Assembly (NCBI GenBank): GCA_024704765.1
Contig: JAKMXF010000321.1
Coordinates: 186,001 to 250,000 of the forward strand
Length of the DNA stretch: 64,000 bases
Origin: Oopsacas minuta
Taxonomy: Eukaryota; Animalia; Porifera
Direction of reading: 5' to 3'
In this document: positions 45,372-60,906 of the stretch, piece by piece
Layout of the letters: every line of letters begins with the position of its first letter
Position numbering within the stretch: the first letter of the stretch is position 1
Notes under the pieces: generated by a model
Database searches by the model: none
Told to the model about the DNA's origin: nothing
Seen by the model: the letters and a program-made list of their open reading frames with translations, nothing else
Program-made: the position numbers and the translations under genes

Positions 45372-45719
45372 TCAAATTTTTGGGGGTGAGGCGAGGAAGG
45401 TTCTTATCTTGTACAGCTCAACCTCCCTATGTAACTGGGACTTTTGTTCGGATAGTTTGTCCTTAATGTCTGAAAGGGAAACAATACTATCTTCCAACTC
45501 TTGGAGTTCTCTCTCTTCCAGGGCCTTCGATCTTTCTCGTTTCCTAATCTTCTTAATTCTCTGAACTTCTTTCAAAGTCAAATTAGTTTCCATTAATCTT
45601 TTTCGCAGATCGATACAAGACAGAAAAACTATCTCATCAAGTGTTATACCGAAACTAACTAGAAACTTCAAATCGTTATCCATTCTAATTTGTTTGTTGT
45701 TTCCAGTTTGATTCAACAT
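45372..45719 (-). CDS. Small CNC/Maf-like bZIP protein with shortened basic region (copy 1; likely start at 45683)
   Basis: EHR-like ITLDEIVFLSCIDLRKRL…LKEVQRIKKIRKRERSK followed by a Leu zipper (L-x6-L-x6-L-x6-L); TATAAATA at 45732-45739. Confidence 0.7.
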   Translation of the reverse strand: MLNQTGNNKQIRMDNDLKFLVSFGITLDEIVFLSCIDLRKRLMETNLTLKEVQRIKKIRKRERSKALEERELQELEDSIVSLSDIKDKLSEQKSQLHREVELYKIRTFLASPPKI

Positions 45720-48694
45720 TGAAGTGGCCAGTATTTATAGTTCCAATTTAAATTATCTCATTTTTTACTTTAAGCATTTTATTAGGGAAAATACCAAAAC
45801 AAATATATTTTAAGCAGAGCCTCTGACTGGTAGAGGTAAATAGTATTTAATTATAGCGGTAGACGTGTCGCGCTACCTCACCTCTAGTGCTGCCTACGCC
45901 CTTGCTTCCTACTATACGCGTGAAAACACCTTGCCCAATGTCCTACCCCCCTGGCAACTTCTTTGACCCCATTAGGTAAAATATCCTAGCGACGTCCCTG
46001 TATTCCACACGTGTACCTAGAATTGAGTATCCAAAGCACCACAATCATATGATTATAATATTGTAATCAAATATTTAACGTTACTCTGTGGACAATAAAA
46101 ATTCAGTAGACATCTGCAAATTATAATTTCCATATTTTTAGTGATTCTATGACAATGAAAGCTTTATTTATTCAACATTTACTATGATTATTGTGAATTT
46201 CCATTTATGGAAAATGCTTAATTTTAAGAAATTGATATCAATTTATGTACTCATGAGACAATTTATATTAATTAGTTTCAGTTTCGGTGCCAGCTATGAA
46301 TTGAGGGAGGTATTTGAGGTAAGATTATGTGAATTAATTATGCAAAACAGGCTCGTAGACAATTTTCAAGAGTGCAGGAGGAGCTTATAACATCAAATGG
46401 GAGATTATTTGTTATTCAAATACAGGAGAAGTTAATGGTAACAAAACTGTGGGTGCTTAAGCCTCCAAGCTCTCTCTCCCCTGTCTACCTACGGCTTGCA
46501 TAAAGACTGAATGTTTTTATTTGCACGCTATCATTTAATTCCGAGTAATATGTTGTGTCAGTATAATTGAGTAAGAACATTTGGGTTATGTCCTGCTGTT
46601 CAGAAATGTCCTACAAGTATTCAAATGTTCGAATTTGTCCTTCTCCTATATTGGGCTTTATCCTACAAATTTGCTGCTCCAGTGTCTTTTAGGTTGTCTG
46701 AAGCATATTTTTTCCTTAAGACATATCCCAAACAGATTGTTTACAGCATCACAGGACAAAGTTCTCCTACAAACCCATATTGCCTCTCATGATATTGGAT
46801 ATTTGGCCATTATTCTGACGTTGTTTGTCCGTAATTGATTGAGGAACTGGTAACAGTTACGATCTTGAAATTTGGCTCATGTGTGGAATGTGATTCACCT
46901 AGGGAGAATTTCTAATATCTAAGAGATATCTCCACAGCTCTCTGGGATAGGTGACAAATATCTCAACCCAATCAGATTTGAGGGTTCACTCAAATTAATT
47001 GTGCCTTGCTTTAAGGAAGTTGGATGGAATTTCTAACTAATTATTGGAATTAATCTCTACTTGTGTCTTCTTTGAAATTGCTTATCAGAAGTTTGACTAA
47101 ATTAGTTTTGCAGTTAATAAGATTTATGGTATTTGATTTATCAAATATTCTGGTTATGTTCCTTTTCGAAAATTTGAGTCGGAAGGTGGAGCGTGCATTT
47201 TATTATCGCACAATACAGTCAGGATCGCTTATTTGAATTTTATTGTGAATAATACCAGCGACAATAAAATAATTTCCATAGCCGTAAGCGGGCTCACACA
47301 TATATTTTGTATTAGCTCCATAGGGGCAAGAACCAAGCGATGGGGCTCAAGCCCTGCCCCCGGGTTCTGTCCCTATGTCGCGACTCTTGTGGAATTGTCC
47401 CGCGCGATGTTACTCTGTTAAAGTGTCAATTACCGGATCGGCTTTGGGAGATTATTTTAACTTATAAAAAACAACTAACAACCATTGCCTTCCAGAAACA
47501 GTTAAATGAATCCAAAACTATACAAAAGGAATCTAACTCTATTGAATTCTACGCATTCATTTTTGTCGATCTTCCCAATGAACAACATTATAAGCCAGAG
47601 CTATTGGCTTCTGATTTGTATTAGAAACCAATCAGCTGATTACTTGTATAACAGGATTAATCAGCTGGTGAATTCGTGAAATTTCGTAGCCTTAATTTTT
47701 CAATTTTCAAAGAAATATTTTCCGAGAAAATTTATGTTTTCAGAAACTTATTTAATTTGTATTGAATTTCTGTCTTTGTTTTTTCTAATTGAATAATGGC
47801 AGCCTTGGACAAGTTTCCCAATGCATAAACAACTACATCTAAATAACAAACAAACAAGCAAACAAATACGATTATTACCTCCCAAACAAATATATTTTGA
47901 GCAGAGCCTCTGAGGCCCTGGCCTTATTGGTCAGGGAATGTTTGAGATGTCTGGATTTCTTTTAGGAATGGACCAATAAGATTTTAACCTCGATGAACAT
48001 ATGCATATTGAAGGGTGGTTCAAATGGATGTACCGTATTGAGGGAAATACAGAAACATCTGCGGCTCTATAAATTCAAACTTAAGAATTGGCTGTGCATA
48101 GGGTCCCAATGTGTCCAACTTATGAGTATTGGTTTTTATGAAATATTCATACAACAAACTCTTTCAAAATGATCCGCCTGTTCAATAAAAATGATGAAAT
48201 TACATAATAGGACAATCCAAATTATAGTTTCAGTTTTGAGCGTACCAGGCGGTGCTATAGTTCCAGTTCTATTCTCTGAATTGGTAGGATCTGGAAAATA
48301 ATTCCGTAGCTGATATTTTTTGGAAAATATCTTAAATAATTTAATCAACACCAAAACTGGATTTTGCTGAATGGCTCTTTATGCTTTTTCTAAATACGTA
48401 TTCGTTTAATTACCAAATATCTTGTGTTGTATTACTAATTCAATTTCTTGTTTCTGTAATTCTAAAGTCTATGGCTCCGAATTGGCCGTAAGGAGTATGA
48501 CCGTTGTGATTTGGGAATAATCTATGCTGACAGAAAATTGGGAATACTTCTTACAATCAAGTGATAATCTTTGTCTTAGATATTCAATATTTCCAATTTT
48601 CAAAGTAAACACATTAACCATTGAATATATGACTTATGGTGTATTAGTGAGATATTTATCCATCTATTTGGATATTTGATTTTTGATCTTCCCA

Positions 48695-48843
48695 CAGTAA
48701 AGTCTCGTTAATACGAACACGGTTAAGGAGTACACATCTGTTCATTTTATCAGTCCCCTTCGATGCCATCCAATGTTTGGATAATACTTTAAGGTGTACA
48801 ATTTTGGTGGTCCCCTCGTGTACCTATTAACGAAAGTCTACTT
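48695..48843. mobile_element. Tigger-like MITE
   Basis: CAGTAAAGTCTCGTTAATACGAACAC…GTGTACCTATTAACGAAAGTCTAC. Confidence 0.55.
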
Positions 48844-49648
48844 TAATTGGAAAGTGTATTTTTAGCGGTCATATCTACGTATATGCACACTATTGATAAT
48901 GATTAATTGGACACGTTTTTTCAGGACATATTGTCTTATTTATCGATGGAATTACGTAGTTGCTGATCCTCCCAGGATTCCTGGATTATCTAAGGAAATA
49001 TTCCAAATAATTACTGAATTGCTACAGTAAAACCTCCCAAAGGTGAACACGCCTTTTCTCAGTCCCAAATGTTTTCAATTGCTATACACAATCTCATAAA
49101 AAGTAAACACCTCTCATTTGTGAACATTTAAGTCCCCAACGAAGAATATTTATTTGTTACTCAAAAGTATGTATTTTCAAACGAGGATTTGATTCTGGTT
49201 TGAGAATTCCAACACATTTCGATCCTTAATACTCACTTTTTGTAATTTTACAAAAAGTATACATAGAAACTTAAAATATTAGAATTTTCAATAATTACGA
49301 TTATTTAAGTCTTGTAATTATACCCAAATTTTAATAAATTCAAAATCACCATCCTCAGGGTGTCACTTACTGAAGGTTTTTCATGTAGAATTAAATATAA
49401 TTCTTGGAATTATTATTTTGAGTTGTTAAGTATGAAATATTGTCTCCCAATTCGTTGGCACTTACCATCAAGACTGTCCAATCCTAGGGGCACTATTCAT
49501 CGATTCTGTCCCCCCCCCTGTGGGTCCAATTGTATCAATATAAGCCAATTAATCTATAAACAATAATATTATTCCATTCATGAATGAGATATGAATAATA
49601 AAGGGAGAATACACACACGACTAATAGTTTAATTACAAATACACACAA

Positions 49649-51611
49649 TTACTTCTTGAAAGAGTCAAGGAACTTTTTCACGATTTTCTGTACTTGTTTG
49701 ACTTCCAAGCTTGGTTCGATTTCGGAGGAGGAGATCGTTGATCCGCTGCATACGTTAAGCATCTGACAGACTTGGCTCGGGTCTAAGATATTCGATAACT
49801 TAGACTGAATATTCATTATTGTTTGCTGTATTTTGTAACAGAAATCATACCCGAACATTCCACATAGTTGGTTAATAATATAGTTACCAGTTGAGAGTGT
49901 TAAGTTTATGACTTTTAGTTGCATTTCAGCTACTGAAATAGCGATTTTACATACAGAGCATGCGTTAATGTTGTTGTTATTGTTGTTATTGTTGTTGTCA
50001 CCCTGGATTAAGGCGTCATTTTCTGCTACTGCCAAGCTGGCGGTCATAATTTGGTTAATTTCCATCTTGAAATTTTCCAGCGTAACATAGTCATCATTAC
50101 AGAGTTTGAAATCTGTGCACAGCTCTTCGCCATCCAATGTTTCGATGAATGATTTTACCATTGTGACGTATTCTACAGCCAGTGTAGCACACTCCTTCTC
50201 CTCTTTCGAATCCATAGTTTCACAGGCCTGTTCCATCAATTTCTCCAACTCCTCACTGCTCAACTGTAAACAAAAACAACAATATAAACAACAAACCGCA
50301 ACACGCCGTTTCAACAAAACATCCCATTTTAAAATGTATCATGAAGTATTTATATTACAAATGAGTAAACAATAACAAAAAGTGTTAATTCAATTATTAT
50401 ATATAGCCATAACTGTTGCCACCACCAAGTAAACTCGAGCTTTCACCTCCAAGGCATGAAAAGCAGGGAGGACATAAACATCCAAGTAAACATAAACAAG
50501 GAAGAGCGAGCAGTAACAAACAAAGTAAGCACAGCCCGACTAAGATCCCGATTAATGAAGCAGGACTGAAATTCAGGAAATCGAAAATGCTGTTATCGTT
50601 CAAATCGTCAGGCCAATCGTCATAGTCCCAATCCTCCCAATCATAATCGTCCTCCTTGCCCCCCTTGTTGTCGTCCCTGTTGTCGTTATTGTCATCTTTA
50701 GCTGAGATGCGGGAAAAGGCGATTAGTAAAATTAAGATCACCCCGGCTAATAATCGGTAATTTCTTTTGAAGCTCATTTGCTAATTTTGCTTGTTAATGT
50801 CTATAATTTCCTTTTCATATAATTATTAATATAGTCACACTAATAACCTACCACCTGTCATATTGGAAAAAAAATTATTTTTCAAGAAAAATTTTGGTGA
50901 ATCTCAATTTTGCCAAAGACATACTTACCAACCCCATTTGCAAATTTTCCTGTATATGAGTTAGAAATCTAGCATTCTTGGCTAATCCATGGTTCCAGGG
51001 AGGGTTGGCAAGTAAGCAAATAATCACCAAATAAGGTGTTAGTGCCCTTTCAACACAGACACAACCATGGATAACATCCAATTTAACCCTACCTCTGCAA
51101 CTGCTGATTTGATTTCGGATATGATATACTGACAGCCTGTGCATTGAATTCCATTCACCAATCTTTGATACTCAGTTGCTTCGATGTACATTTTAGTGGC
51201 TGAGCATAGCTCAAACATCGTGCAAGCGCTTTGCGCGTCTTCGGCATTCACAAAGTCCTCGATTCGACTGTAGATCTTTGCGACACTTTTGAGACACATT
51301 TCGTTTCCGTTGTTGCATATGGTTCGGTCCAACACGCTTAAGATGTCCATGTCCCCTCCGTCGTCATAGAACATATGGAGTTGATTGTAGATGGTGTAAC
51401 ACATACCACATGAAGTCTGCTTGACCTCATCACCCCCAACAACCTCTGAAATGCTTTTCCAAACATTTTTTGCACAATATTCGGTCATGCCACATTTGTC
51501 AGCATTTTCAGCGCTTTGACACCAAAATGATGAGCCATGAAGACAACCGATTGTGCCACCTTGTACTGCCACTAATGACAGGGCCACTAATGCCAAACTC
51601 AACACGCACAT
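49649..51611 (-). CDS. PSAP-like: Prosaposin-like protein (signal peptide, SapA, 3 SapB), ~377 aa; exons 51611-51093, 50263-49649
   Basis: SapA GC.HGSSFWCQS…KCG…YC…VW. The GT-AG phase-0 join reconstitutes the 6-Cys second SapB; short poly-Asn tract before SapB3. Confidence 0.85.
50397..50777 (-). CDS. 126-aa putative type-I membrane protein (signal peptide, D/W-rich acidic ectodomain, TM helix, Cys-rich juxtamembrane tail), nested in the prosaposin intron
   Basis: Coherent signal-peptide/ectodomain/TM/Cys-tail architecture; coding-like composition contrasts with the AT-rich flanks. Confidence 0.7.
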   Translation of the reverse strand: MSFKRNYRLLAGVILILLIAFSRISAKDDNNDNRDDNKGGKEDDYDWEDWDYDDWPDDLNDNSIFDFLNFSPASLIGILVGLCLLCLLLLALPCLCLLGCLCPPCFSCLGGESSSLLGGGNSYGYI

Positions 51612-52385
51612 ATTTGTTGTTTTGTTGTTATTTATGGATGGGAAATGATTGGAAATTTACTTGCTTGTTTAAATAGTACTGTTATCTATCAGCATACAGT
51701 CAATATTGAATCCATAGCTTTTCTATCCAGATGGTTTGAACGAATGAAGCCACTTTGAATGCGACACAATGCGCCATTATCTGCCACCTGACTCATATTA
51801 TTATATAAACAACTTTATTATAGTTATATGCTACGAAACCATTATCGAATGAATCCATTTTTAGTCTCACAATTGACTGCTGCCACTTTTAATATCAAGA
51901 ATATTCTGTTTTATTTTTATTTGTATAGTAAGACACCATCTGTCAACAATTATGGCATATGTGTCTTCACACTTCGATGCTAAAATAACTTGCTAAACCT
52001 TAGTTAATCGATTTGGGCGGGGAATTTGCATTTAGGCGGGCATTTACAATTTCTAGGCCCCATAATTCAATTAGCAAATGTAGAGTGAAAACTTAGGCGT
52101 GTAAATGCGGGCTTATCATACATTTTGGCGGGGAAAGATATTTTTCGAAATTTAGCGCATAAACTATAAATATAACTCCATCTAATAATATAATCCATTT
52201 TGCAATTAATGAAATTATTTATAAAAACAAACAAACAAATAAACAAACATAAATTCCCATATAAGGAATGCTAAGCTTAGCAACTAATAAGGCAACATGG
52301 AATGCAACAAACAACAAAATAGCGATTATAGAAGCAAGCAAATGCATTATAGAATTCAGCAAGGAAATTATTCTTCGATCAGTTA

Positions 52386-52811
52386 TTACTTATCTACGGA
52401 TAATCCAATTACACTACCCAGACTACAAATTACGTCATCCAATTCGACTTTAGATACTTGAGGTGTTGCTACATTCATGTTTTCATTTTCTAAATAATTC
52501 TTTATTAAATAAATTTCCTTTTCTTTCTGTAATTCGTCAATTTCAATCAATAAATCCAATTTCTGTTTTATCAAATTGTCAACACTACATTCCAGAGCCA
52601 TCATCTCGTTGCTTTGAGAGACTTTTGAACGTTCTCGTTTCCTAAACTTGAGAACACGCAATTTCTCATTTTCACTCATTTTTTTGAAATTCAGCTTGTT
52701 TTGCAGTTCTCGACTGTTTAAGAATAAAACATCATTCTCTTTCAATTTGTATTTTTCTAGAATTCTTATATCTCGGAATTTCACATCCTTTACATGCCAC
52801 CTCTTCTCCAT
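52386..52811 (-). CDS. Small CNC/Maf-like bZIP, shortened basic region (type 1, copy a)
   Basis: LKENDVLFLNSRELQNKL…MSENEKLRVLKFRKRERSK plus zipper LECSVDNLIKQKLDLLIEIDEL; TATAAATA at 52872-52879. Confidence 0.75.
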   Translation of the reverse strand: MEKRWHVKDVKFRDIRILEKYKLKENDVLFLNSRELQNKLNFKKMSENEKLRVLKFRKRERSKVSQSNEMMALECSVDNLIKQKLDLLIEIDELQKEKEIYLIKNYLENENMNVATPQVSKVELDDVICSLGSVIGLSVDK

Positions 52812-53808
52812 TTATTATTTGTTATTATTTACTATAATTGGGCATTTTTAGACCAATTATCTCTTTAACTATATTTATATAATTTCTCATATCTCTTACT
52901 GTACATAAATGTAAGAAATGGAATTCTTACATTTGTTATGAGTGCTAAGTTAATTATCAACAGATCATGTGAAGTCATAAATTGTTTCTCATTAAACGTC
53001 AGGAAAGATTTTATTCATATTTTTCCAAACTTATCCATAATTCTTTCGTCACATATTGTGCAATCCAAAATTACTATTTGTATTGTTGAATAATTCAATA
53101 TTTTTATTCCAATAGAGAATGTGATGAGATAATCAGAAGGTTTTAAAATATTTTCAAGACTTTCGGCTGGAATTGTACTTCAATCCGAAACATCGATCAG
53201 CCTCTGGCCTGAGAATCCTACCCCCAATTATGTCAGATACTGGTACCCTCCTGGCTTAGATATACATCTGCTAATTAATTCAAAAAGTGTGAGTAACTTT
53301 GTCTTTGACTTAGATATCGCAGTAATGCTGCGTAAAAAGCGTAATTTAATGCCTAAAATAAATAATCAATAGAATACATGTGACGTTAAAAATATATTTT
53401 TCCAACTTCAAAATAACCATACGCTTTTGTCTCGGATGGTTCATATAAGTCATGGCTCACACAATTATCTTAAATATCAATTTCCTTATATCGGACGCCA
53501 GAAAATCTGTGCTATACTCAAGGGTCATTTTCAATTTTGCTGATGTAAGTAAACTTTTGTAATGCAATAAGGCATGACCGTCTAAACATGGACACACATG
53601 GTTAATCCATAAAATATGCTTAGAATTGTAATTTGATTATTTTTGCTTCTAGACTATGTAGCGTGGTATATGGGTATTGGTCTTCAGCCTTCTTCTTCAG
53701 CGTGGAGTCAATTAGAGCCTTTTTGGGAGTACACCCTGGAACTCGAGTGCCCACCCAGATTTGAATCCACCATGATACAAAAATCTTAAATCATAGTCTT
53801 GTTGGCTT

Positions 53809-54274
53809 AAAATTGAATTTTACTAATCTTGTTATACATGTAAAAATGTAAAAATGTAATTCTACGTCCCTGTTTACTCCTATTTAACAAGTGGAAGCTA
53901 ATCTCTAGGATAATTTTGAAATGTTAACTAAAAGGTGTCAAAATATGATTAATCATATGATAAATCAGTGTGTATATATTTAATATAATGTATTGACCAA
54001 TAGAATTACAGTCTACATCAATACAAATACATTACAATGCTAATTACATTACTAACACTCCACCAGAACTAATTTTATGCATTAATGGCTAATTGTAAGA
54101 CCCTACAATCTGATTTGGCTAAAATACAGAAGTGTCAAAAGGTGTGAAAATATACACATTAGAAATTTTTCAAATGTCAGGTGTACAACTAGATGTCACT
54201 ACGAGTATATATGCCAATTTTGTGTCTTAATCTCTAAAGGTGTGAACAGCAGAGCAAAAACATTTTAGAACTGA
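53809..54274 (-). mobile_element. ~600-bp repeat, copy B (centre of the pair-1 spacer)
   Basis: Reverse complement of 1845-2350. Confidence 0.85.
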
Positions 54275-54303
54275 TTTTCACTATGCTATGTAATATGTGA
54301 GCA

Positions 54304-54311
54304 TGACGTCA
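54304..54311. promoter_or_regulatory. Palindromic CRE (TGACGTCA, within ATGACGTCAT) in the shared upstream region of pair 1
   Basis: Exact ATF/CREB consensus; function not shown. Confidence 0.35.
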
Positions 54312-55090
54312 TCTTTCCATCCTGACCTATGAGCATAGTTGGCCTTTGTATCAGCTGATTTCATTGCATGAAAAGGTGTCCCGCTCACGTTTGCTAATTT
54401 GAATAGTCAGTACTGGCCACCACTATTAGAAGCAGTTTATTGAAACTTTAATACGAATCAGAATTAATGCCATATAAAGTCTATGTTTCATATATTATAA
54501 CTTCCAGTAATAGAGTATGTCTAAAAGCATTACAATGCATAGGATAGAGCATTTTATCTATTTTCTCAGTGATTAGCTAAGATTACGCTTAGGAATGTGA
54601 ACTAACTCTAATTTGTAGCATGTTACCATAGCAAATTTCAAGATTGTAGCTCTTACCAGTTTTTCAATAAATGTGGACACAAAGCTCAAATTTGCACAGT
54701 TGGCAAAATGTTATATAATACACACATGACGTATTGCCATGTCTAACTACCATATGTAACCTGATCGTAACAATATTAAATGACATTATATTTATAGAAT
54801 CGCATAAACTGCAACTATACTTTGATATTGATATATTTGTTAGGAAAATCTTACAGAAATGTAGTATGTACACTGTCTGTAGTACATACAATTCTAATTA
54901 TTAGCTGATGGGAAGTTGCTTGTTTTGTATGTGTTTTAGTTCTTTGTGTTGTTAATACAAAAAGGACTGATGTGAAAGTATGCAAAATTAATAAATGCGT
55001 ATTTTCTTATGGTAAGAAATGTTAAAAAAAATATATATATGATGGGAAGGAAAGATGAGTAAATTAGTAGTAAATAATAACAAATAATAA

Positions 55091-55516
55091 ATGGAGAAGA
55101 GGTGGCATGTAAAGGATGTGAAATTCCGAGATATAAGAATTCTAGAAAAATACAAATTGAAAGAGAATGATGTTTTATTCTTAAACAGTCGAGAACTGCA
55201 AAACAAGCTGAATTTCAAAAAAATGAGTGAAAATGAGAAATTGCGTGTTCTCAAGTTTAGGAAACGAGAACGTTCAAAAGTCTCTCAAAGCAACGAGATG
55301 ATGGCTCTGGAATGTAGTGTTGACAATTTGATAAAACAGAAATTGGATTTATTGATTGAAATTGACGAATTACAGAAAGAAAAGGAAATTTATTTAATAA
55401 AGAATTATTTAGAAAATGAAAACATGAATGTAGCAACACCTCAAGTATCTAAAGTCGAATTGGATGACGTAATTTGTAGTCTGGGTAGTGTAATTGGATT
55501 ATCCGTAGATAAGTAA
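55091..55516 (+). CDS. Small CNC/Maf-like bZIP (type 1, copy b; identical to 52386-52811)
   Basis: Identical 141-aa product. Confidence 0.75.
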   Translation: MEKRWHVKDVKFRDIRILEKYKLKENDVLFLNSRELQNKLNFKKMSENEKLRVLKFRKRERSKVSQSNEMMALECSVDNLIKQKLDLLIEIDELQKEKEIYLIKNYLENENMNVATPQVSKVELDDVICSLGSVIGLSVDK

Positions 55517-55728
55517 TAACTGATCGAAGAATAATTTCCTTGCTGAATTCTATAATGCATTTGCTTGCTTCTATAATCGCTATTTTGTTGTTTGTTGTTG
55601 TTCTATGTGCTGAATTCTTTCGTATATTCTATATATTTGTCGCTTTATTATTTTGTATGCAAATTTCTCGCTAAAAATGAATTAAACTTTTGAAAATATT
55701 TTGAAACCAGAAATCTTATTAGCCAATA

Positions 55729-55976
55729 CACTGCCTGACCAAAAGTATTGGAACACCCTGCCATAAGTAATACCTGAAACAAAGGGTATGCTTACCATAG
55801 TTGTATAAGCTAAAGATGATTTTTTTAATTTTGAACATAAATATATCGTAAAACGAATGGTAACAAGCTATTGTTCTACTTTCTGCAATATCCATAGAAT
55901 CTTTAAACCTATTCTCATCTAATGCCATTTGTGCACAAGTTGTAAACAGTGTTCCAATACTTTTGGCCAGGCAGTG
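55729..55976. mobile_element. Tc1-type MITE, 248 bp
   Basis: TA-CACTGCCTGACCAAAAGTATTGGAACAC…GTGTTCCAATACTTTTGGCCAGGCAGTG-TA (28-bp TIR, one mismatch). Confidence 0.85.
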
Positions 55977-56783
55977 TACCTAGAATGTGAAATATATGGA
56001 ACATTTCAAGGATTTTCTGAGCGGTCCACTATTCCATCATCCTATTTTGTCACATGCACAGGCCCACAGGGCATTTGCCTGGTGTCCCGGTGGCACAATA
56101 CGCCACTTCAGTATGGAGTTAGATGAGATTTGTGAGGGGCGCTATCCATTGACACAAAGTGTTCGCAAGCCGTGCGGTGCAAATTTGTGAAACATGCTTG
56201 TATATACGAAATTCAAATATAAAAGCATTTTGGAGACAAACTAATTGTGGAATTTTACAACGGATCTAATACAAAAGTATCCTCTCTCTCTTTACGCGGG
56301 TCTTTCAGCCCATTCAGCCCATTTTTATATGTGCCCTCCCAAATTGAAACCAGAAATGTCGCCTCAAATACTTAAGCAATGACAAATTATAATTGGAAAG
56401 TTTCAAAACAGATTTGATTATTTATACATAAGTTATTGCTTACTCGGGTAATGCAACGGTTTAATGATGACTATTATGGGATTATTTACCTAATTAATGG
56501 AGGTTAGATATTGATTATTATCTTAGAAACTGCTGGCAGAACAATTCACGCAGACAAAATATCAAAGTTGAAACCGATCAAACTGAATATCAGTATTCAT
56601 GAATAGCAACCTGACCAAATACTGATAAGGTTCGGTTTGGGCCAACCGAATACCGAATACTGATATCCGGTTGGTAACCGAATATTGAACTATTCGGTTG
56701 CAACCTTGCAAAATATAAATATTATGTTTACTCTCATTGCTTGAGATATTCTTTGCATTGAGAGGCCCTTTATTCCATCGATT

Positions 56784-56873
56784 AAAGTCACTCAAAGCAA
56801 CCTGATGCTGGCTTTGGAATGTAGTGTTGATAATTTGTTCATTGTAAGACAGAGCACTGTAGTTAATGAATAA
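56784..56873 (+). pseudogene. Relic of a type-1 bZIP gene (KVTQSNLMLALECSVDNL…*)
   Basis: Matches KVSQSNEMMALECSVDNL of 55091-55516 at DNA level; upstream homology and start codon are missing. Confidence 0.7.
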
Positions 56874-56980
56874 TATACAAATATGTATTTTGTGAATTTA
56901 ATATATTAGCAAGCTTACAATAATAATTAGCAGCGAAATGAAAATAAGTGACATTATTTGAAGATTAATTTCCAAAATTT

Positions 56981-57349
56981 TTAGTTGTTTTCCATTTGGA
57001 TACATTCTTTATGCATTTTCTCCCAATATTCACATTCTTGTGTCATTTTGTCACGTGTCAATAAAAGTTCATTTTTCTCCTCAAGGAGGTTACCAATTGC
57101 CTCCTCCAAGGTGTGAAACTGTCCTCTTGAGAACAACTTGTTCTTTTCACGTTTTCGTATATGTTTAACTCTCTGAACTTCTTTTGCGTTTAGCTGTTGT
57201 TTAGCGATTAATTCCCAAACAAGTTTGTAATCAGCAAATACCAAATCGTAGTATGAAATTCCGAGTATTTGTAAAAGAAAACAATCTTGAGTTGGTAATG
57301 GCCTTGGTTTCCATAGAGACGCGGTTGGAATGTTCTCAGCTGTTGACAT
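56981..57349 (-). CDS. Small CNC/Maf-like bZIP, shortened basic region (type 2, copy a)
   Basis: ISYYDLVFADYKLVWELIAKQQLNAKEVQRVKHIRKREKNK plus zipper; TATAAATA at 57409-57416. Confidence 0.75.
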   Translation of the reverse strand: MSTAENIPTASLWKPRPLPTQDCFLLQILGISYYDLVFADYKLVWELIAKQQLNAKEVQRVKHIRKREKNKLFSRGQFHTLEEAIGNLLEEKNELLLTRDKMTQECEYWEKMHKECIQMENN

Positions 57350-58143
57350 GTTTATTTATTTATTTATTTGTAATTTTATTTGTTGTTGTTTGTATTTACA
57401 ATTCTGAGTATTTATACACAACTTATCAAGTTTCATTATTCATATACACATGTAATTCTTGAATAGCAGACTAATAAGCAATAATGCTTTCAATATTAAG
57501 CTATACGAGTAGATATTGAAAATATACATAGAATTTCAATATCAGTTAGTAACAGACAAAAATTCTTGTTAGTTCTGTATATACTCATATGATATTGTTC
57601 AAATTATATACAATTTGTCGATGGCAAGAAAGTGAAATCGATAATATTTATTTTTTAGTGATAAAACAATGCAAATCGTAAGAGAATAGCGATTTGATTT
57701 GAAATCTTTTCAGAAAGCTTTCTGCTACTGTCCATTGAAGATCACTTAGGGTCCGCAGACTATAGCCCTACTCCACCCAGAAAATCTTACATTTTTCAAT
57801 CCAGGGAAGCCGTTTCCAAACTTTTTCTGGACCCCGATACCAATTTTAACACATTCTATGGACCCCTTGCTGTTGTCTGTTGACTCCCAAGGGACCCCAG
57901 GTTTGTAACCAATGCATAGACTCCAAACTATTACTCTCCATATTCTGGTCATCACACCGTTTTTAAGGTTTAATGCAAAATGTTAAATAATTCACATAGT
58001 TTACAAGTTATTGTTTCTAATGCTGCTGGTCACTTGGAGTGTATCCCAATGGCCTATTGGGTATGTAACTATATCTGATGCGACAGTCTGCTACAATTTT
58101 ATTTGTTCAAGGCACAAAAGCATATTTACTAACACTTTGTAAC

Positions 58144-58174
58144 CAGAGGTGTAGCTAGGGACGCTACGCCTCTG
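58144..58174. mobile_element. 31-bp hAT-type micro-element
   Basis: CAGAGGTGTAGC-TAGGGAC-GCTACGCCTCTG with an 8-bp TSD TTTGTAAC on both sides. Confidence 0.8.
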
Positions 58175-59384
58175 TTTGTAACTGTTTTCCTTGGATATTT
58201 TTTTTCGAAAAATCCTCGATTTTCAAAATTTTATTCTACGCAAATAATATGAATTTCTCACTTTTTATGGGGAAAAAATGACAGAAATATCTAAGAATTT
58301 AATGGATTCATCAATTTCCCTAATGGACTATAAGCCACATCCCTGGATGGTTGGTAAAGGAAACTGATAAGTCAAAATTCAAATTCCGTGAGAATTCTAA
58401 AGTTTCAATTGCGAAGATCCAATACATTAATCGCTAGTTATATTCATCCTTAATATTAGCGCTTCTGTGTTACTCTACTTGCTAGTTTCATAGTAGAATC
58501 GGCTGATAATTTGTATTACATAATTTCCAGATGGAATTACAATCTTATGAGCCTTATAAAGCTAGGCGCGTAAGGATATTTCTCATTTTTAGTGGATATC
58601 AAAGACTAACTTGTATTTGCATTACCAAATCCATTATTAACTGTTTGATACAGAATCTTTGTTACTGTAATTTAATTAGTAGGTTGATTACACATACACA
58701 CATACCTGACCGACCTATCAGTTTCTTAAGCCAATTTTAGCGCCAAAATCGTATTGTAACTATAATTTGTGGACTTTGGTATGCACCTAGCTCGGACATG
58801 ATTCTTCTATGGTCTATTGGGTCCATAGAGTTCTTGATATATGATAGTCTATGAATGACAGTAGGGGGTTATTCAAGCAAAGGAGCTGCACTCCAGCGTG
58901 AGACCCCGCTCTGTGAGCACGATTGAGCGGACAAAATGGTCTACCCCTCTAATTATTACGCGCTCATGCATTTTTCTCAAAGAAAACTCCAAATCTTTCC
59001 AGAGTAATGAAAATATTAATCCCAACAGGATAGTACGAATTTGCACAGACCGCCCTTCTTAGTAACAAAATCGTAAAGTCACAAAGTATTAGACAATACA
59101 TTAGTGATAGAAAATATTACAAATGAGCCACAAATAATATTTCATAAACTTCCCTTCGTAGTGCGCGTCATTGTGTTAAGAGTAAGCTAATTTAATTAAT
59201 ACAAATTGAAAGTATTCTTTAATAAACTACCCTGGAATATTGCTCCTTATTAAACTGTTTTCAGTTTAATTACACGTAACACAGAATATTTTCCCAACAA
59301 AATGATTATCACGATGGACACTTTAGAGGGCTGTTCAAACGCTATGTAATGCTTCAAGCCCCATTCTTTATACTGTACTGACTA

Positions 59385-59843
59385 TTTTTCGCTTTGCTGT
59401 TCACACCTTTAGAGATTAAGACACCAAATTGGCATATATACTCGTAGTGACATCTAGATGTGCATCTGACATTTGGAAAATTTCTAATGTGTATATTTTC
59501 ACACCTTTTGACACTTCTGTATTTTAACCCAATCAGATTGTAGGGTCTTACAATTAGCCATTAATCCATAAAATTAGTTCTGGTGGAGTGTTAGTAATGT
59601 AATTAGCATTGTAATGTATTTGTATTGATGTAGACTGTAATTCTATTGGTCAATACATTATATTAAATATATATACACTGATTTATCATATGATTAATCA
59701 TATTTTGACACCTTTTAGTTAACATTTCAAAATTATCCTAGAGATTAGCTTCCACTTGTTAAATAGGAGTAAACAGGGACGTAGAATTCCATTTTTACAT
59801 GTCTAACAAGATTAGTAAAATTCAATTTTATCTTTCTTTACTA
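59385..59843 (+). mobile_element. ~600-bp repeat, copy C (pair-2 spacer)
   Basis: Near-identical to copy A. Confidence 0.85.
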
Positions 59844-60537
59844 AATAAATATTTAATAGAATAATATTGTTCAATAAATTCTCACCCACAACTATGTAAC
59901 ACTCATTTACCCGTTTATAGATAAACCACAATACGTTAGAATGGGTGTTAAAATTTTGTAATTATGGTATGACATCTTTGGAACAATTTGCACCGCTGGG
60001 TACCGATTCCAACCCCCCCACGAGCACTGGTTCGCACCCAAAGGGCCAAAAAGGCCAAAAAGACAGTAAAACACACATACAGTTTTATTAATTAAGTAAT
60101 ACAACAAGATTCCAAAAGATGAACAACTTGTCTCAGTCCCAAATGTTCTCCATTGCTACACATAATGTCATGAAAAGTGGACACCTCTCGCATGTGAGCA
60201 TTTTGGTTCTCTTACAGGAAGTTTTACTGTGTTAGCACAATTGTTGATTTTAATTCTTCATACTATTTGTTTCTCAGAGGAAACGTTTGAATATCAGAAT
60301 TACCAGAATTTAGCATATTATCTATTGTTAAAGGAGTTTCAGTATACTTTTACTATTTTCGATATCTGCAAATACTTTCTAATTGAAAGTTGTAACTTAC
60401 ACTAACAATAGGACGCTAAGCTACTGGTAATTTTTGGTGGAACAAAAATATTATTTGTTGCTTCATTATAGTAAATAAAATTGTATAAATAGGACAGAAT
60501 ATCAAAATAATGTCAACAGATACATTTAGACAATAAA

Positions 60538-60906
60538 ATGTCAACAGGTGAATATATTCCTAACATAGCTTTATGGCAGCCAAAGTCTTTGCCAAGACAA
60601 GATCAAATACTTTTACAAGTACTCGGAATTTCATACTACGATTTGGTATTTGCTGATTACAAACTTGTTTGGGAATTAATCGCTAAACAACAGCTAAACG
60701 CAAAAGAAGTTCAGAGAGTTAAACATATACGAAAACGTGAAAAGAACAAGTTGTTCTCAAGAGGACAGTTTCACACCTTGGAGGAGGCAATTGGTAACCT
60801 CCTTGAGGAGAAAAATGAACTTTTATTGACACGTGACAAAATGACACAAGAATGTGAATATTGGGAGAAAATGTATAAAGAATTAATCACTTTGGAATAC
60901 AGCTGA
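60538..60906 (+). CDS. Small CNC/Maf-like bZIP (type 2, copy b)
   Basis: Core identical to 56981-57349, termini diverged; TATAAATA at 60484-60491. Confidence 0.75.
   Translation: MSTGEYIPNIALWQPKSLPRQDQILLQVLGISYYDLVFADYKLVWELIAKQQLNAKEVQRVKHIRKREKNKLFSRGQFHTLEEAIGNLLEEKNELLLTRDKMTQECEYWEKMYKELITLEYS

Follow-up and report, generated by a model that had tools for sequence, protein, structure and literature searches.

The 64,000-nucleotide stretch of the Oopsacas minuta genome analyzed here (contig JAKMXF010000321.1, positions 186,001 to 250,000; hereafter the window, in whose coordinates positions are given) contains a cluster of five small genes whose predicted products most resemble the DNA-binding domains of CNC-type basic leucine zipper (bZIP) factors, but from which seven residues of the basic region, including those that read bases, appear to have been deleted. 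The genes represent three sequence types. Type 1 (t1) is a single uninterrupted open reading frame (ORF) of 115 residues on the minus strand (45372..45719), encoding CNC-like helices, the basic motif RKRERSK and a zipper; its start is probably the second Met, at 45683, giving 103 residues, and this Met is the start in t1 orthologues and in the database call (103 residues). Type 2 (t2) occurs as two identical uninterrupted ORFs of 141 residues, copy a on the minus strand (52386..52811) and copy b on the plus strand (55091..55516), which end in the C-terminal motif ELDDVIxSLG. Type 3 (t3) likewise occurs as two uninterrupted ORFs, of 122 residues each, copy a on the minus strand (56981..57349; motif RKREKNK, with its Asn retained) and copy b on the plus strand (60538..60906), which are 85-87% identical. 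The original prediction of five genes with a shared basic motif and zipper, made from the DNA alone, was thus borne out at these coordinates. Counting from the Asn or Ser of RKRE(K/R)(N/S)K as position 0, all five genes carry this motif, Leu at +11, +18, +25 and +32, and an aromatic residue at +39; as had been noted, the first zipper Leu lies at +11 in every type, and Asn, present at position 0 in t3, is replaced by Ser in t1 and t2. The three types are mutually only 25-28% identical and align free of indels over the entire span that starts about 45 residues ahead of the basic motif and runs to the last zipper residue.

Kinship with CNC-type factors is seen mainly when family members are compared as a group. 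Searched singly, t1 matched the Pfam family bZIP_Maf at 20.2-20.6 bits, below its gathering cut-off of 22, and t2 and t3 had no Pfam match at E-values up to 10; bZIP_Maf was nonetheless the only Pfam family that recurred across members (12 of 20 at E < 1, all below threshold, the best 20.6 bits). A profile hidden Markov model (HMM) built from 20 family sequences and compared with PDB sequences retrieved Nrf2 (E 6.8e-6), BACH1 (6.5e-5), SKN-1 (8.4e-4), NF-E2 p45 (0.037) and MafB (0.32), and a broader profile of 30 sequences retrieved Nrf2 at E 3.7e-6; over both profiles, Maf proteins scored at 0.003-0.3 against about 1e-5 for CNC proteins. Among 1.8 billion representative proteins the family profile found 48, about 30 of them short members and the rest full-length proteins in which the C-terminal bZIP domain is the matched part; the cluster giving the best long match includes an 'NF-E2 45 kDa subunit-like' protein of Oscarella lobularis. 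A feature search of the ESM Atlas returned bZIP_Maf clusters only, the nearest from Porifera. Read directly, the pattern R-5 K-4 R-3 x K/R-1 N0 K+1 is closer to RRRGKNK of CNC proteins than to RRRTLKNR of Maf, and the Maf Gly-Tyr signature (N-R-G-Y-A; G+2/Y+3) occurs in no window gene. Profile scores and motif pattern alike support derivation of the five proteins from a CNC-type bZIP factor, nearer to CNC than to Maf, so that the CNC/Maf-like kinship anticipated by the original prediction, together with the profile similarity proposed as its check, is upheld even with sub-threshold Pfam scores for single proteins. A 116-residue gene beside a canonical Vazella-type CNC gene, tried as a further member, proved unrelated.

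Structure prediction points the same way. The AlphaFold2 (AF2) model of t1 (predicted local distance difference test score, pLDDT, 92) comprises three short helices and one long one (residues 2-10, 15-20, 23-31 and 37-98), and that of t2 (pLDDT > 90 over residues 11-110) repeats this layout, its long helix spanning residues 47-112; in both, the zipper is continuous with the basic helix. Structural likeness was judged on VIA Z-scores rather than on Foldseek E-values, which were weak (0.03 or worse), with all of the top 11 Foldseek rows CNC or Maf proteins and the t2 list headed by Nrf2, NF-E2 and SKN-1. By VIA, the t1 model superposes on Nrf2 residues 455-558 with Z 9.1 and 2.2 Å over 101 of its 103 residues, followed by MafA (Z 8.1; 7.4-8.1 for MafA, MafG and MafB) and SKN-1 (Z 7.1), unrelated rows scoring 4.9 or lower. 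The three-helix CNC motif can be recognized in the family both from the profile, which spans it in Nrf2, BACH1 and SKN-1, and from the AF2 helices, which superpose on those of Nrf2. Zipper d positions +11, +18, +25 and +32 are each Leu in 26-30 of 31 members, and +39 is aromatic or Leu. The t2 subfamily also conserves an acidic-hydrophobic C-terminal motif, E(L/I)DDVIxSLGxV, at residues ~120-141 (window 52386-52454 and 55448-55516), modeled by AF2 as a separate helix of low confidence (pLDDT 50-62); conceivably, it could bind a partner or activate.

The deficit in the basic region emerged from alignments made in both directions. In place of the canonical spacing of 18 residues between the Asn and the first zipper Leu, the equivalent Leu stands at +11. 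When the family profile is aligned by HMMER, Nrf2 and BACH1 show seven extra residues immediately following K-N-K-x5, and 16 of 18 long canonical matches span seven residues more than the profile itself. In a gap scan that set 31 family members against 20 canonical relatives, anchored on the basic motif and covering gap lengths 0-15 at every position, length 7 scored 31.65 and no other length exceeded 8.1; the optimum, N+7, lies within a range from +2 to +11 where scores stay high (26-32), with 13-18 for gaps placed in the zipper (g = 13-34) and 6.5 for the ungapped alignment. The outcome was the same when t1, t2, t3 and the remaining subfamilies were taken separately. Three sets of columns discriminate: the invariant L11/E12 of the family corresponds to canonical L18/(E/Q)19; its near-invariant Lys at a-position +22 corresponds to canonical K/R +29, canonical +22 being V/I/L; and the motif that closes the zipper, L-x-(R/K)-E-(I/V/L)-E-x-Y-K, occupies +32..+40 in family members, whereas sponge CNC proteins have it at +39..+47. 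Conversely, when aligned to an HMM of canonical CNC proteins, 25 of 30 small members lack 7-8 positions between N+1 and N+15, which in all window genes are +6..+12 (t3 copy a scoring 38.4 bits). Five distant members align to it without a gap, a caveat on the deletion, as do one Maf protein and three Maf-like small proteins. Because the zipper is periodic, the limits of the deletion can be placed only approximately. That exactly one heptad is missing, as originally proposed, nevertheless agrees with a gap length of 7 and no other in both alignment directions, subject to the ungapped alignment of human NRF2 with the broader profile that is weighed below. The three Maf-like small proteins (100-113 residues) are P0077 (contig L010, 6001-6342), from an assembly that also has family members, P0064 and P0066; they keep a basic stretch with Tyr+3, and in P0077 Ser+7/Arg+8 and in P0066 Arg+8, with the invariant Asn replaced by Met, Ala or Leu. 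To judge from these sequences they are another kind of mini-bZIP.

What was lost and what was kept can be read against the Nrf2-MafG-DNA structure, in which Asn507, Ala510 and Ala511 read the TGA half-site (PMC9756947), and the CNC motif positions Nrf2 Arg499, Arg502 and Arg504, which make phosphate contacts (PMC9756947). The substitutions R502M and R504M and deletion of the CNC helices each cost Nrf2 more than 30-fold in affinity (PMC9756947); R502 and R504 are family positions -5 and -3. Among canonical relatives A+3 is present in 19 of 20 and A+4, C+7 and R+8 in 20 of 20, and all four are absent from all 31 family members, in keeping with the claim that the DNA-contact block is missing. Accordingly, none of the five window genes shows the bZIP signature N-x2-AA-x2-(C/S)-R, with Asn at 0 only in t3. 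Position 0 itself is variable across the 31 members counted (N 11, S 11, E/A/I 8). R-5, K-4 and R-3 are invariant (31/31), E-2 is present in 25 of 31, and the CNC helices stay conserved between subfamilies whose identity is otherwise 17-30%. By direct reading of the sequences, a shift of seven residues lands (N/S)0-K+1 on canonical (C/S)+7-R+8. The window contains no MARE- or CsMBE-like palindrome (Maf recognition element; CNC-small Maf binding element) within two mismatches, where 0.66 would be expected by chance.

All members known to date come from sponge assemblies, which agrees with the proposed lineage specificity of the family; the two members with a named source are from the glass sponge Vazella, and most likely all of the family-bearing assemblies are glass sponges. 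Each of the three types has orthologues in further large sponge assemblies, and the family comprises at least seven subfamilies, several within one assembly. In a maximum-likelihood tree computed after removal of gap columns, all 30 small proteins fall on one side of a branch supported at 83/86 and present in 85% of bootstrap trees, and the canonical proteins fall on another branch (92/93); the tree does not settle where the groups stand relative to Maf. Since the family forms one group in this gap-free tree, the deletion would have been inherited from one ancestor rather than repeatedly selected, and the family is probably monophyletic with a single ancestral deletion. Between species, synonymous divergence (dS) is saturated with nonsynonymous divergence (dN) at 0.23-0.41. 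A diverged t2 pair of a related species has a dN/dS ratio (omega) of 0.10, and in the t3 pair of the window the core has dS = 0, ascribed to conversion, and the ends have omega 0.44. These substitution patterns indicate that the genes are functional and under strong purifying selection, as the dN/dS comparison suggested at the outset was meant to reveal. The original argument that the same deletion in divergent paralogues reflects selection rather than decay therefore stands in part: purifying selection acts on the shortened form, but the shared deletion is better explained by single inheritance (83/86) than by repeated selection.

Transcripts are available for a relative. The t3 orthologue of Vazella pourtalesii is represented in EukProt by a Trinity transcript with a complete ORF, and a second subfamily of this species also has a complete-ORF Trinity transcript. 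Because the same complete 116-residue ORF of the Vazella orthologue is read from a Trinity transcript and from genomic contigs alike, its coding sequence is intronless. A Logan contig (L001), considered as a transcript and checked for a poly(A) tail, looks genomic. For the sponge of the window, contig depth was compared among four runs from the same sample: three are even and DNA-like, and one (X4) is peaked on genes, with depth 313 on t2, 14,000-83,000 on t3 copy a and 22-34 on spacers, over the regions 55068-55753 and 56898-57400. Run X4 may be an RNA library, although contig depth is a hint only and cannot establish expression.

The arrangement of the cluster is itself conserved. Both t2 copies lie within a perfect 530-nucleotide inverted repeat (52305-52834 and 55068-55597), and since contigs from sequencing runs bridge all four of its junctions, the repeat is not an assembly artefact. 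The t3 copies share an identical tract of 254 nucleotides (60620-60873 and 57014-57267; codons 28-112), with ends that are much more diverged. Three glass-sponge assemblies (the window, ERZ25072740 and ERZ26869290) have a common gene order, t1, a saposin gene, the t2 pair and the t3 pair, and in all three the t2 and t3 pairs are head-to-head; t1 is single in the window and a head-to-head pair in a related species, and a tblastn search for a lost partner of t1 found none. Pair members within one species are 75-100% identical and orthologues across species 54-69%; this closer likeness within pairs, together with the identical tracts, argues for recurrent gene conversion between inverted arms.

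Further features of the locus were recorded beside these genes. At 52431 and 55471, which correspond to each other in the two t2 arms, run contigs show a mirrored variant (T>G and A>C); it alters the third position of the Val127 codon without changing the residue, and the arms or alleles are thus not strictly identical in the sequenced material. High-copy repeats occupy the spacers of the gene pairs (53766-54287, 55680-56027 and 56550-56723), with contig depth 10-100 times that of their flanks in the DNA-like runs, and a 420-nucleotide repeat copy, inverted and 97% identical, lies in both pair spacers (53841-54260 and 59386-59805). An 18-codon relic of a t2-type gene on the plus strand (56784..56837; 83% identical to t2 residues 63-80 by tblastn) sits just downstream of t3 copy a with no surrounding ORF, and is a trace of an earlier duplication or rearrangement in the cluster. 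The saposin-type gene (49649-51611, with SapA and SapB_2 matches; in relatives, contig L002 4893-6766 and contig L014 7705-9452) has two coding parts, and nested between them is a gene for a small, acidic and Cys-rich membrane protein; all three glass-sponge assemblies keep this arrangement beside the bZIP genes. A fourth type follows the t3 pair in a related species (L002, 16624-16971; 115 residues, motif RKREKNK), and resembles P0032.

Several known systems invite comparison. The best sequence and structure matches are the CNC-bZIPs (Nrf2/NFE2L2, NF-E2 p45, BACH1 and the sponge 'NF-E2 45 kDa subunit-like' protein), with which the family shares a CNC motif of three helices that packs against the beginning of the long helix, an N-terminal basic segment of the form R-(R/K)-R-x-K-N-K, a Leu zipper whose second a position is Lys and, with sponge members, the zipper-end motif. 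Obligate pairing with small Maf on CsMBE/ARE sites is a hallmark of the CNC subfamily. Unlike the CNC-bZIPs in sequence and length, family proteins are only 100-140 residues long and have no regulatory or activation regions, carry Glu for Gly at -2 and often a replacement of the Asn, score below the bZIP_Maf threshold, and are without seven basic-region residues that include the invariant AA and C-R. SKN-1 of Caenorhabditis elegans is a CNC member that also dropped one of the three canonical modules, and its CNC motif and basic start align with the family (E 8e-4; Z 7.1, 2.3 Å over 70 residues). It is the mirror image of the present case, since SKN-1 gave up its zipper, retained the entire basic region and binds DNA as a monomer (PMC9756947), whereas the family kept the zipper and lost the base-reading half. 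Small Mafs (MafF, MafG and MafK) are likewise short, with accessory helices, basic region and zipper, and their fold matches at Z 7.5-7.7; their basic region is complete, with the Gly-Tyr signature, and they bind MAREs, whereas the family lacks both features and its profile is weaker to Maf than to CNC. CHOP/DDIT3, engineered A-ZIPs and, among bHLH proteins, Id are dominant-negative models that dimerize with a basic region unable to make canonical DNA contacts. CHOP, a single gene, arrived at this by substitutions (Pro/Gly) rather than deletion, Id proteins have no basic region at all, and A-ZIPs carry an acidic extension. The family resembles these systems in prerequisites only, an intact zipper and missing base contacts, and differs from them in strictly conserving a basic stub and an accessory DNA-clamp motif and in its large gene radiation.

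The account that we favor, and hold at about even confidence, is that these truncated CNC-derived proteins are dimerizing attenuators of bZIP transcription, in which the deletion arose once in an ancestor and was kept by selection. Each protein retains the CNC three-helix motif, the N-terminal basic half (R-K-R-E-K/R-N/S-K) and a zipper with five d positions, modeled as one continuous long helix, and lacks the seven residues that hold the base-reading core (AA at +3/+4, C-R at +7/+8), so that the zipper begins about eight residues after position 0. One deletion in the family ancestor is most likely; the shortened form has since been maintained by strong purifying selection and has spread into at least seven subfamilies, with head-to-head pairs homogenized by gene conversion in the window. 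The proteins would enter the nucleus by means of the basic stub, which fits the import consensus K-(K/R)-x-(K/R), and would pair through their zippers, either among themselves or with a full-length bZIP partner of the CNC, Maf or another type. As they cannot form the canonical base contacts, such dimers should bind CNC/Maf-type sites weakly or not at all, and the net effect would be a dosage-dependent attenuation of bZIP-driven transcription. The role as attenuator draws its support from the loss of canonical DNA recognition in proteins that yet keep a good zipper.

Several observations weigh against this account. The CNC motif and R-5/K-4/R-3, which form a phosphate clamp in Nrf2 (PMC9756947), are invariant in 31 of 31 members; such conservation exceeds the needs of a zipper-only inhibitor and favors some retained contact with nucleic acid, although the same basic stub could act as a nuclear import signal. 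Since a zipper-only inhibitor would not need the clamp arginines, the invariance of R-5 and R-3 and of the three-helix motif argues against a purely Id-like reading, one of the two first offered. Support for monophyly is moderate and the root of the tree is not fixed. The deletion is a well-supported reading of alignments rather than a certainty, since human NRF2, set against the 30-sequence profile, needs no gap to reach the same E-value. Finally, no run of the window genome is on record as RNA.

The invariant clamp is the starting point of the alternative that survives best, which we regard as possible though on balance unlikely: the proteins would be DNA-binding factors of a new geometry, the radiation of subfamilies serving to diversify specificity. 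The R-K-R clamp would lie two helical turns nearer the zipper fork (about 10 Å, on nearly the same face), and the target would be a shorter or differently spaced site, or the shape or backbone of DNA. In its favor, R-5, K-4 and R-3 are preserved without exception, E-2 in most members and the CNC helices across highly divergent subfamilies; mutation of Nrf2 R502 or R504, both positioned by the CNC motif, costs more than 30-fold in affinity (PMC9756947). The landing of (N/S)0-K+1 on the canonical (C/S)+7-R+8 after the shift also fits, and the acidic-hydrophobic C-terminal motif of t2 could be an effector motif. The same shift, however, puts bulky R/K at the two invariant alanines, which must pack on thymine methyls, and position 0 varies in a manner unlike that of a base-reading residue; the window offers no palindrome of MARE or CsMBE type, and the basic stub alone could be conserved for nuclear import. 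The specific proposition that the proteins constitute a new class of bZIP DNA binders and not inhibitors, the shifted Arg clamp gripping a compressed or a backbone- or shape-defined site, seems to us a shade less probable again.

Improbable, and already disfavored by the alignments, is the alternative in which the basic region suffered no deletion at all. Here the family Leu at +18 would be the canonical Leu +18, the C-terminal basic half having been substituted into an extra zipper heptad and one heptad lost further down. An ungapped alignment does also pair Leu at +18, +25 and +32 and Ile at +15, and it is the alignment that the 30-sequence profile produces with human NRF2 (E 3.7e-6); the three small Maf-like proteins, moreover, share the zipper register of the family and keep the basic stretch through +8 (+12 in P0077). 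Yet a gap placed in the zipper scores 13-18 against 26-32 for g = 2-11, and no gap 6.5; L11/E12 and Lys +22 fit canonical +18/+19 and +29 rather than +11/+12 and +22; and for 25 of 30 members the deletion assigned by HMMER falls between N+1 and N+15. That the genes are chance coiled-coil ORFs, decaying pseudogenes or transposon cargo without host function, to which the high-copy repeats in spacers between genes, the lack of any run of the window genome on record as RNA and the sub-threshold Pfam scores might incline, we consider very improbable and already contradicted by the conservation and selection data, with orthologues of all three types in the same order beside the saposin gene in other glass-sponge assemblies, dN of 0.23-0.41 at saturated dS, Vazella transcripts, and confident AF2 models of the CNC/Maf fold.

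The genome paper on Oopsacas does not mention bZIPs (PMC10280926), that on Aphrocallistes mentions one bZIP of unknown function and does not describe the family (PMC10282587), and a survey of the bZIPs of animals, none of them a glass sponge, found their repertoire remarkably stable (PMC4736632). Our search of the literature for any description of a shortened CNC-bZIP family found none. To our knowledge, the spacing from the DNA-reading residues of the bZIP basic region to the zipper is fixed almost universally. The family appears to be a natural exception, in which a deletion of one heptad took the base-reading core and left the CNC clamp, and the shortened form was conserved, duplicated into many subfamilies and kept as head-to-head pairs across glass sponges. 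Under our preferred account of dimerizing attenuators, as under its alternatives, it offers a natural experiment on what the CNC motif and the N-terminal arginines do without canonical contacts, and on whether non-vertebrate animals use truncated bZIP families as dimerization-based regulators. Should the proteins prove instead to be a new kind of DNA binder, glass sponges would have built a large private repertoire of transcription factors on an altered geometry.

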